Source of the DNA: Oculina patagonica
Lineage: Eukaryota
Direction: 5' to 3'
Assembly: GCF_052425735.1 (NCBI RefSeq)
Contig: NC_135758.1
Span: forward strand, 1,612,001 to 1,676,000
Length of the DNA: 64,000 nt
Below are positions 39,197 to 52,996 of the stretch, piece after piece. The translations under genes were made by a program, and so were the position numbers. Under the pieces are notes generated by a model. It saw nothing but the letters and a program-made list of their open reading frames with translations, made no database searches and was not told the DNA's origin. How positions within the stretch are numbered: the stretch's first letter is position 1; each line of letters opens with the position of its first letter.

Positions 39197-48075
<8,879 letters not shown>

Positions 48076-48838
48076 CGAGCACGCTGTCATTTATGATCGC
48101 TGTTATTAAAATGCTTGTTGGTTTTTTTTTTTTTTTTTTTCAGAAATAGAATGTAAACTTTTGAAATAAATCATTTAGAACAGAGATACTCATGATTGTC
48201 ATTTTGTTTTTCTGGTGTTAGTGAGGGTTACTGTGGATGACTTAAGTACCGCAATATGCATGCAACGATTTGAAATTTGTAAGTGGAAAGACCAAAGTCA
48301 GTTAAAATAGATTGCTATCACCTTTAGATTTTATTCATTCTGTGCATACCAAGTGTCCAATAAAGGTCAGTACACACAAGGGACAAGTCCCTGAAACAAG
48401 TTCATTGAAGAGTTTACATGAAGAGGTCAGTACAGCCCTGGGACTTGCTTCCTTGTATGTGCAGACCTTTATTTTGGGGAGCAAGTCCCAGGGAACTCAG
48501 ACAAGTTTGAATTTGTGGGATAAGTTAAGGAACCAGATTTCGGTCCCAGAGACTTAATTTATATAAAAAAAAATGATCAGTTAACATGAAGGGACCTAGA
48601 AACGTCCCCAATGCTTGTTGCAGGAACTAGTCATTGATGAGACAACATCAGAAGTTGTGTTGCAAAAATTGAAGACACTGACAATGGGCTCGATATCAAG
48701 CTTTCTTTTGATGTTCATGTAATTATTATTTTGCTGTTTGAAATTCAGAGAAAATGTCACAAGTCCGACTAGTGTTTGACACTTAAGACTATTAAACAAT
48801 AACAAAGTGTAGCATGTACTAGTGTAAATAGTGAGAAA

Positions 48839-51259
48839 TCATTCATGGGTATACTGCCTACAGTCAATTTCTGTAAATTTCAACACATATAAAAGCTCAG
48901 TAAGTTTCTGTAGCAGATCACCAACTGCCCATTCTTCATTCTTCATAAATTGCCAGTAACTTTGCACAGCGGTTCTGATTTCCACACATGACGATGCAAG
49001 ATTGAGGTCTTCCATGCGTGGAATTGTGCAAGGTTTCTCACCATCCATTCCAACCCCAGCTTTGATGCTGCCATTTTCTGGGTTGTATTTCATTTTAAAG
49101 TCCATCTTCATACTGTTAATATGTGTGTAATGTGCTAGAACTTTGTATTCATTTAGGAAGCTGTAACACATTATTTCAAATATCTCGATCAATCTGTTTC
49201 CAAGCTGTGTTTCACACCAGTCATTAGTTTCAGTGTAGAAGTCCATCATAAATAACACCACAGTTTTCATGTAGAAAGATGGAATTAAGGTGTCCTCGCA
49301 TAAACTACAATTGTTTTTGTTCATTTTTGGCAGGAAACTTCTTGCCACATGTTTTGCCAGTTTGTAACAGTCTGCAGCCAATTTATTGTCATGAAATTTG
49401 TATGGTTCTGTCTGAAAAAAGAAGCGTTCTGCAACAAGAGGGTTTCGACTGATAACTGCCACAACCCCTGTGTTCATTCGAAGGCACTCACTGTGAACAA
49501 AGGACAGGTGCAAAGCATGAGTATGGTCAGCAACGTAGATTGTCTGGAGTCGCTCAGCGTTGAGAGGAATTCCATAACATACATCAATAGACAGGATAAA
49601 GCCTGCATCTGGTCCAGAGTCGCATTGTAGATGAAGAGTCAAAGTTTGATTCTTAAGGTATACTCTCATCATGTGTATGTCACTTTCCTCTTGCATTGTC
49701 CATCCAAGAGGCAAGTGCTTCCTTACAGTTTCACGAAAGACCTGGAGCATATAGGCATTTATAAGATAGTGCCTGTAGGATGAATCAACAAAGGAAAACT
49801 GACACAGGAAAGAAAGGACTTCATCGCGGATGTCATCATGAAGGCGAGTTTGTATTCCAAGTTTGACGTACAAAAGTTCTGCCACATCTGAATCAGCTAA
49901 CATAGGGAGAGCGATATTAAAATCAAACTCGTCAGGCTGACCAATCTTGGTACCCTCTGCCATACTGCCAGTTTCTATGATGTAGCACTTGGAAAATATT
50001 TGGTGCTTTGTCTACAGTTCTTGGACAGTGTTGTTCATTAAGCTCTTTACCAGCTGTTTGATGCGTTCAGTTTTGATCAGTGGATCAATGCTGATACTTG
50101 GTAGCCACTTTGTGATTGTATTGTATAAGACTGACTGTTCTGAAACTGGTGATTGAAGTTCAGTTTTGAAATGGTGCACCTTAAAGGTGCTAACCTGTTT
50201 TGGGGTATCCACACTTGTTACTCTCATATCTTGCCCTGACTCTTCAATTCCTGTACTCTTTTCATTAGACTTTGTTTCCATGGTTTCCAGTGATCTCCTT
50301 CCACCAATGTCTGTAGCATCCTCTTGATAATCAAATGCATCACAGAGGCTGGGGATAGCATGATCACTCTCACAACTTGGACCTGTCTCATCTGCTCTTG
50401 TTCTAAGCACCTCCTCACATTCTTCTGACTTCAGAATGCATTTCAGGTTTACGTCATTAGTTTCCGTTTTTATATTTTCTTTACTGTACACTTTATTTTG
50501 ACTGATGGGCTTCAGTTTCTCTGAACTCTCGGTCAAACTCACATCATAACCAACAGAGGTGCTTTTATCATCAGTGTAGGGTAACTGAAGGTTCTCTTCA
50601 ACCGCTTCTTCAAGTCTGCTGTTTTCGTTTTCGTTCATTGTCCGGGGGGCCATCTCCTGCATCGTCTCACCACCTTCAAGCGTTCTTTGGGTCTGTTTGT
50701 CTTCTGAAATCATTGAATCGGTTTCATTTTTCCCAGTGTCCCTTATTAAGTATTTCTCAACACCTATTGACAGAAGGTCTTGCAGGTCTGAAAGCATGTT
50801 GATACTCCTTTGCAAGAGATCAGTCATGTCATCCATTGATAACGGCTCATCGGTGGATTTGTATTCGATCGCTTCCGGGTTTGGCATCGATTCATTTCCG
50901 AGGTTAGCTTCACAAACTAATTTGCTTTCACACGAGTCAATCGTTGTATCTATAGAGCTACTATGATCTCGGTTTGACATCTGATCTGGCTGATTGCTCT
51001 CACGGGTGCAACTCAAAGGTACACGATGTCTTGTTTTTCTATTGAACTCCGAAGGACTGTTTACATAGTTGACGCACCACATAACATACGGCCACACTGG
51101 TTTTGCAACTAGTGGTCTCGTAGCATCTTCCTGTTCAACTTTTACGTCTTTTGCCAATATCGCTTTTAATCGTTTTTCAGCCGTCTCTGCTTCCTCTCTA
51201 AGTAGCAGTACCATCTCAACATCGAATGGATTTTCAAATGGATCGGTGGCTTCCGCCAT
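48839..51259 (-). pseudogene. cGAS-like receptor (cGLR; Mab-21/cGAS nucleotidyltransferase), intronless 806-codon frame interrupted by one in-frame TAG at 50014-50012 (nonsense allele, pseudogene, assembly error or readthrough)
   Basis: ORFs 51259-50012 and 49963-48839 are in the same frame. The linker reads ...LMNNTVQEL*TKHQIFSKCYIIETGSMAEGTKIGQPDEFDF, the hGS..EG.K...PDEFD NTase motif. Third Asp in LSIDV; Mab-21 C-terminal CYKLAK and IPSFYMKTVVLF. The N-terminal ~390 aa are largely acidic/low-complexity. Confidence 0.85.
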
Positions 51260-51420
51260 CTTTTCCTTTCTGTTTCGGTGGACGAGCTCGTGGAAGAGGG
51301 AGGACTGGATTTAAGTAAAGCAGTAAAGCTAAGGTCCTGGGGTGCGATGCATCATAGGTAGCAACCGGGAAAACCCCGGATATCATCAAGATTTTATTTG
51401 TTTTTATTAGGCACTTTTAA

Positions 51421-52161
51421 GGTCGCGCAGGACCCTTGCTCATTAATAAATTCATTAGCCAAATTTTTGAACATCGATCAAAAAATCATGATGGAATTAC
51501 ATCATGATTGTCCTTTTACTGAGAGATGACCGTTTGCTGTAATGTTACAGGTTCTTAAAAGTTTAACTGCAGATAATGCGGTTTTGTGTCCAAGTTTTCG
51601 GCTACTACAGCGCACCGAGTTAAATGATTATATAACCTAGTGATGAATCATAACCTCTTTTCTGTTATGACAAGAACGAAATTTTCGATTTCAAAAACTG
51701 CTAGAAGTTATCTGCTTCTAAGAGAGTAAAAATGTGAAATCTAAACTTTGAAACGTGCTATCTTCATTTTGAGAACGAAATTTCAAAATTCGCTCTTGTC
51801 ATAACACAATAGGGTGCGCCAAGTTCATGTTCCTCGCGAATCAACTCCGGAAATTCTATATCGGCGAAGATAACTTGGACACAAAATTGCAGGATTTTCC
51901 GCTTCCGAAGACCTTCCGAGTCAATCTTTACAACCGACGTGTGCTATATTCGCAGCAGTGAATCTAATTATGATAATTCGCTTTGTTTCAGCGCACGGTA
52001 CGCAAAGCTGAGAACAATACCGTGTAATTACTTGTACAAAGAACTTGTACAAAGAAAAACATTGTCATGAATATTTCGTTTGTTGTCGGCTTCAGTCGTC
52101 GCAGTTCGTGCCTACTCTTTAAATAATACATACATAATGATCTCAAGGGTCCTGTGCGACC
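51421..52161. mobile_element. TTAA-TSD MITE (Kolobok-like), 741 bp, just upstream of the cGLR gene
   Basis: TTAA|GGTCGCGCAGGACCCTTG ... CAAGGGTCCTGTGCGACC|TTAA. Confidence 0.87.
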
Positions 52162-52309
52162 TTAACAACGCATTTTGATCAAAACTGCCGCAGCTCGTTT
52201 CGAAACGTATCTTTTATCCCTCCGTTGATAAGCCCACCCAAAATTCCTTACGAAGTTGTATAAGCCCAGGGCTTCTAACCAGAATTGTACGGTATTCATG
52301 ATTGTCATC

Positions 52310-52996
52310 TTGTTGCGGGCCCAAGAGAGGCCCGCAACGTCGCCCGCAACCCTAATCTTGACATTGTCCAGCGGATTGCGTATTACGCGTGCGCGCCACG
52401 TTTATAAAGGCTATCTGCAAACCGGAAGTTGAAAATTTTGTTCTTCCACTAAGAACGATCGGAATGCAAAAAATGTGTCAATCACGACAGTTTGTCGTAA
52501 CACCGGAAGAGAAAAATCTTGTCTCCAAGAGCGATAAGAATGCGAAAAATCAACAGTTTGTCACATTAGATCGAGGCTTCTGTCTTGCAGACATTACCGG
52601 TACGTTTTGCAGACGTTGTTTTATAGGTGTTGCTTTTGAGAAGATCTGCTGTGATCACAGATAAACTACGGCAAAGCGAATGATTCCAACAACGGTTATT
52701 CTCGAGAAATTCCTTATAACACTGACAACAAAGCGAGTTTGCCGACGGAGGAAAATCACATCTCAATTCACACCGCGTGCTCGACTACACTTCGCAAAAT
52801 TGTCAATCAAAAAAACAACTCTGATTGGTTTGCGGCAATAGGAAATGATAAAAAACATTCGTGACTTAAGCGTGACGCGTTACTCGACCTTACTCGGAAT
52901 AATTTTCTTTTGTCCAGTGATTTAAAAACACTTCCCTCCAATTACCTTCTCAACTGCATCGAGGCCCGCACTTTCTAACCTGTGGTTACCACTAGT
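52310..52996 (+). mobile_element. Helitron2/Helentron-like non-autonomous element
   Basis: 5' hairpin GTTGCGGGCC..GGCCCGCAAC; matching subterminal GGCCCGCA at 52963; 3' hairpin TAACC-TGT-GGTTA; CTAG end followed by T-run. Confidence 0.55.

Follow-up and report, generated by a model that had tools for sequence, protein, structure and literature searches.

Animal cGAS-like receptors (cGLRs; for example Stylophora pistillata Sp-cGLR1, and the solved structure 8gjy) combine a Mab-21 nucleotidyltransferase (NTase) core with a C-terminal helix bundle. Genes are assigned to this class by three criteria, namely an active-site motif, homology across both lobes and predicted structural homology, and the motif used for searching places X50-90 between [DE]h[DE]h and the third element, h[DE]h (Li et al. 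2023, bioRxiv 10.1101/2023.02.22.529553). Expanded repertoires of these receptors have been reported for corals (Li et al. 2023). Functionally, a cGLR responds to its ligand by making a cyclic di- or oligonucleotide, which acts through STING. Two other described situations bear on a coding frame interrupted by a single stop: programmed readthrough, as in UGA-CUAG genes such as MDH1, and nonsense (loss-of-function) alleles of immune genes that segregate in populations, also known as polymorphic pseudogenes. Here we analyze a coral cGLR-type gene whose copy in a reference assembly carries one in-frame TAG, and compare it with these systems.

A cGAS-like gene with one in-frame TAG

The gene lies on the minus strand of a 64,000-nucleotide stretch of Oculina patagonica DNA (contig NC_135758.1; hereafter the window), which contains no N. 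From 51259 to 48839 (2,421 nt) it translates as one frame of 806 codons followed by a terminal TGA (48841-48839), and this frame contains exactly one internal stop, a TAG at codon 416 (50014-50012, context GAA CTG TAG ACA AAG). A preliminary description of this DNA had proposed that two minus-strand open reading frames, 51259..50012 (415 aa) and 49963..48839 (374 aa) in the program-made list, were a single 806-codon frame with a lone TAG, and that no second stop or frameshift existed in the 2.4 kb; translation agrees with it on both points. It also counted 14 codons from the TAG to the GS motif. The stop does precede GS, but it is located 15 codons upstream of G431, 14 being the number of codons in between. 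We regard the gene as a single-exon coding sequence from its translation, from an intact 806-aa product (P0088) and from a syntenic single-exon orthologue (L012), both presented below. In the assembly's allele the frame through the catalytic domain is broken by the TAG at codon 416, while an intact allele is present elsewhere.

The identity of the gene as a cGAS-like receptor, previously suggested from the letters of the DNA, was confirmed at several levels. The C-terminal piece matched Pfam Mab-21 (E 5e-6, 27.1 bits, cut-off 24.1) and, slightly below the same cut-off of 24.1, Mab-21_C (E 6e-5, 23.5 bits). When a family profile of 62 sequences was compared with the PDB, it matched 8gjy, 'cGAS-like receptor 1', with an E value of 3.8e-20 over profile positions 8-364 of 440, and cGAS chains at ~1e-19; homology thus extends over both lobes, the NTase core as well as the helix bundle, as in animal cGLRs. 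For residues 370-806 of the intact allele, an AlphaFold2 (AF2) model reached a pLDDT of 89.1 and a pTM of 0.90, and the best 50 Foldseek matches of the model in the PDB were all mouse or human cGAS (top match E 3.7e-9, probability 1.00, TM 0.49/0.58), which provides the predicted structural homology to cGAS/cGLR. On these grounds (Pfam, AF2, Foldseek and the profile comparison) we delimit a Mab-21/cGAS-fold NTase domain at codons 363-806 (50173-48842).

The active site reads T430-G431-S432, X11, E444-F445-D446-F447 and then I558-D559-V560, so that all three elements, [QT]GS, [DE]h[DE]h and the third h[DE]h, can be recognized. The activation-loop motif G431-S432 (within T-G-S, 49969-49964) and E444-F445-D446 (49930-49922), which provides the first two catalytic acidic residues, are invariant among orthologues, and the active-site residues as a whole are invariant or nearly so across the orthogroup, a further likeness to animal cGLRs. 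D559 (I-D-V, 49585-49583) is the third catalytic acidic residue, and all three acids are therefore intact, as had been claimed. The distance from EFDF to this third Asp is 110 residues, beyond the published X50-90. In the profile alignment the S-I-D-V of the family is aligned with the S-V-D of 8gjy and, since both the fold and this alignment put D559 at the catalytic position, we attribute the longer distance to an insertion in the core and not to an absent residue. With this one exception, the gene qualifies as a cGLR by the three published criteria, and it belongs to an uncharacterised family that adds a new member to a known kind. The whole coral orthogroup may be absent from the published cGLR catalogue, as an X50-90 pattern would miss the 110-residue spacing. 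A literature search for the locus tag of the Stylophora orthologue, AWC38_SpisGene7052, found no paper mentioning that tag. The intact protein presumably makes a nucleotide second messenger.

Unlike animal cGLRs, the protein carries an acidic, mostly disordered N-terminal extension of ~360 residues (codons 1-362, 51259-50174), distinguished from the catalytic domain by Pfam, alignment, model and dN/dS. These 362 residues have a net charge of -33, and a Pfam search with the N-terminal 415 aa matched nothing. In a full-length AF2 model they are of low confidence and mostly disordered, which leaves no fold to search, and the N-terminal half, used as a query against the ESM Atlas, gave no usable match. 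Two predicted helices, at residues 11-31 and 142-174, coincide with conserved blocks. The first ~65 residues are conserved (F12, E15, R30, K37-D38-V39, P54, W56-P57-Y58, W61, N64) and include the motif P-x-W-P-Y-x-x-W-x-x-N at residues 54-64, and a helix with a conserved L-x-x-L-x-x-L-x-S is found near residue 160. The architecture with a long acidic N-terminal extension is kept across coral families. The catalytic domain is net acidic as well (-11), another difference from animal cGLRs and an unusual property in a nucleic-acid sensor.

Codon 416 in other samples and in orthologues

We searched for the stop outside the assembly in four independent comparison runs from four studies: X2, a coral metagenome; X5, which bears the same species label as the possible source run but is a different sample; and X11 and X8, which bear two other species labels. 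As had been recommended in the preliminary description, position 50014 was inspected in these samples, here on assembled contigs. Plus-strand G was found in X2, X5, X11 and X8, that is, CAG (Gln) on the gene strand, with one bridging colinear contig each and 100% of the depth, although, given that contigs lose rare variants, a low-frequency TAG allele may exist in these samples, and a CAG allele in the source. The intact 806-aa product P0088 is encoded on a public Logan contig of 2,940 nt (L010), which differs from the window by 5 substitutions and no indel, 2,935 of 2,940 positions being identical. L010 is very probably the same contig as record 12 of X2, judging from their identical length and identical five differences.

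Orthologues were likewise examined for a conserved stop, and none carries it. Without exception, the orthologues, which come from many corals and are 637-848 aa long, have an intact frame; Stylophora pistillata AWC38_SpisGene7052 and a protein of Montipora foliosa are among them. In an alignment of 33 orthologues, the residue aligned with codon 416 is Gln in 31, Stylophora and Montipora among them, Ser in one and Lys in one. The codon is CAG in L010 and in both outgroup orthologue coding sequences that we fetched (L011 and L012), and the ancestral codon is thus the one that had been predicted. A conserved stop, such as programmed readthrough or recoding would be expected to show, is found neither in the four runs nor in the two orthologue coding sequences, all with CAG, nor in the alignment with its 31/33 Gln. 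These results show the stop to be a derived state that occurs in none of the other datasets examined.

The TAG is not the only difference between the window and L010: the five substitutions in 2,940 nt comprise four coding changes and one non-coding change. Apart from the stop, codon 52 (51106) is GCA (Ala) in the window and ACA (Thr) everywhere else, codon 274 (50440) is TGC (Cys) instead of AGC (Ser), and codon 523 (49692) is CAA (Gln) instead of CGA (Arg), the latter being a CpG transition; all three are nonsynonymous and private to the window. The other three runs match L010 at all four coding differences where they are covered, X11 having no contig at 50440. Because the outgroups L011 and L012 share the L010 state (ACA, AGC, CAG and CGA/CGC), the window's GCA (A52), TGC (C274), TAG (416) and CAA (Q523) are all derived.

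The derived coding changes are therefore four nonsynonymous and zero synonymous. In comparison, when the intact allele is set against the two outgroups, dN/dS (Nei-Gojobori) is 0.36-0.37 overall, which indicates that the intact gene is under purifying selection, and it is lower in the catalytic domain (0.21-0.28) than in the N-terminal half (0.51-0.56). At an omega of 0.37 we estimate p ~0.09 for a ratio of 4 to 0, which is not significant. The pattern fits a relaxed constraint after the stop arose, in a count too small for significance, and the three extra replacements, with no silent change, suggest a null allele that has been drifting for some time, in other words a polymorphic pseudogene that still segregates and not a very recent mutation.

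The 529-Mb assembly contains one copy of the gene, the nearest paralogue being 31% identical, and a search of the same genome for a second haplotig or a close paralogue, which could represent the other allele or a donor for gene conversion, found none. Two distant Mab-21 paralogues are arranged in tandem on another chromosome (L006, G000:C2:41172015-41175815, and L003, G000:C2:41173696-41177601). The weaker-matching of the two (24% identity) has one TAG within the aligned stretch, which could be explained by an intron, by another cGLR that is broken, or by the presence of two genes.

As to the surroundings of the locus, the orthologue L012 of a distant coral is a single exon on a genomic contig of 517 kb, where an SMN-Tudor gene lies close to it (L012:13128-13358), and in the window an SMN-Tudor gene is found a few kb downstream of the cGLR (45117-46210). 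This shared arrangement indicates that the locus is syntenic, with a conserved local order of genes. On either side of the gene (47484-47851 and 51348-52800) the depth is hundreds to thousands of times that of the gene in all four runs, with many short, divergent contigs and numerous joints; these flanks are high-copy repeats (transposable elements) that bracket the locus. At 48804/48809, ~30 nt beyond the TGA, breaks occur in the contigs of X5, of X8 and of X11, and in some of these contigs 22-27 letters are left unaligned, while the X2 contig is colinear through 48804-48809; possible causes of the break are a small indel, a heterozygous bubble and the end of a transcript. In X8, 29 extra letters are present near 48634-48642.

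Explanations for the stop

The preliminary description had preferred, as the simplest reading, either a recent null allele (CAG>TAG) or an error of the assembly, and this choice is supported by the C found at the site in 4/4 runs, by the CAG of the outgroups and by a Gln that is nearly invariant. It had also proposed that the TAG might act as an on-switch of an immune enzyme, through conditional readthrough or through A-to-I editing (UAG to UIG), or that splicing might occur at CTGTAG. A regulated stop of this sort would account for a single stop in 2.4 kb with intact catalytic residues downstream, and a GTAAAG...CTGTAG pair indeed bounds an in-frame stretch of 39 nt that ends in the TAG (50050-50012). 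However, intact downstream sequence is expected of any young null allele, and the stop is missing from 4/4 other samples and from all orthologues, which leaves nothing conserved to regulate; readthrough or editing as a rescue was rejected for this reason. Known leaky stop contexts are UGA-CUAG and UAG-CARYYA. Judged by its nucleotide sequence, UAG-ACA-AAG is neither of them, and the orthologues have Gln at this position, not the Trp that editing would produce. As for the mini-intron, no joint at 50050/50012 was seen in the four bridging contigs, from runs of which none is on record as RNA, and its rejection is based mainly on conservation: its 13 residues are conserved coding sequence that no contig skips, with V404, M408, T411, E414, L415 and Q416 nearly invariant among orthologues. 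The on-switch was rejected on account of the unconserved stop and of a context outside the known leaky ones, and a regulated stop as a conserved mechanism is effectively refuted; in any of its three forms we consider it extremely improbable. The stop shares with programmed readthrough the conserved coding sequence that follows an in-frame stop, and differs from it in being conserved in no relative and in lying outside the known leaky contexts.

Two other alternatives would confine the T to this assembly or to the sequenced colony. If the individual were truly CAG and the T an artefact of base calling or polishing, one would expect, as we found, that no other dataset shows the T; moreover, the T was read from the assembly consensus, and an exact look-up in public assemblies, in a collection that may omit the records of the window's genome, returned the 415-aa product from the assembly itself only. 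On the other hand, long-read consensus errors are usually indels. Here the window and an independent contig are identical at 2,935/2,940 positions without an indel, and the absence of indels together with the single non-coding difference in 2,940 nt indicates that the assembly is not noisy in this region and that the TAG belongs to a set of several ordinary haplotype variants; its position among three other derived substitutions resembles a normal divergent haplotype. X1, the possible source run, contains 0.98 of the sampled words compared with 0.92 for X2, a gap equivalent to the cost of about five variant sites and within sampling noise, which gives a weak hint that X1 carries the variants of the window. 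We therefore regard a consensus error as rather unlikely. Somatic mutations accumulate in long-lived clonal corals, and a mutation of the sequenced colony taken up by the primary assembly, instead of a germline change, would also be found in no other sample. Nevertheless, a single somatic hit does not fit a TAG accompanied by three derived changes within 2.4 kb, as an inherited haplotype does, and this origin seems improbable, markedly more so than an error.

We infer that the stop is present in the DNA of the source individual, and the explanation we favour, which we consider probable, is that the TAG is a real germline CAG>TAG (Gln416>stop) nonsense allele of the individual behind the reference assembly. 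This mutation would hit a cGAS-like receptor gene that is otherwise conserved, present in one copy and made of one exon, and translation would end within the spine helix, in its last turn (both models place this helix at residues 395-418). The product would be the 415-residue, acidic and largely disordered N-terminal half, deprived of the GS loop, of all three catalytic acids and of the helix bundle, and the allele is therefore predicted to be null for enzymatic function. Reinitiation at a downstream Met would probably not restore it, in agreement with an earlier remark that the spine helix and GS would be lost: M433 follows GS and the helix spans 395-418. The haplotype would then have collected the three further amino-acid replacements.

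Consequences and comparison with known systems

In practical terms, gene prediction on the reference assembly will yield split or truncated models here, and comparative counts of coral cGLRs that rely on this assembly will be wrong by one gene if the intact allele P0088 is not substituted. Should the allele be real and segregating, colonies homozygous for it would lack a conserved immune sensor as natural knock-outs, of modest use for work on coral immunity; if it is common or locally fixed, it would represent a natural loss-of-function experiment on one arm of coral cGLR-STING immunity. The stop reveals no new mechanism of gene regulation. In our view the reference copy of this conserved coral cGLR-type gene probably carries an ordinary nonsense variant of derived origin, an error being the less probable reading. 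A wider picture can be offered tentatively, as possible but short of probable: the reference individual may carry a segregating knock-out of a conserved single-copy coral cGLR, with three later replacements at partly conserved positions, in an orthogroup of intact ~800-aa proteins that perhaps falls outside the published catalogue and perhaps senses something other than nucleic acid.

Compared with the animal cGLRs already described, the copy in the assembly stands apart in being truncated at codon 416. The closest parallel to the truncation itself is found among the segregating nonsense alleles and polymorphic pseudogenes of immune genes. As in those cases, the stop, read here from the assembly sequence, is derived, premature and the only one in a gene that is otherwise intact and constrained, and other individuals have intact alleles.
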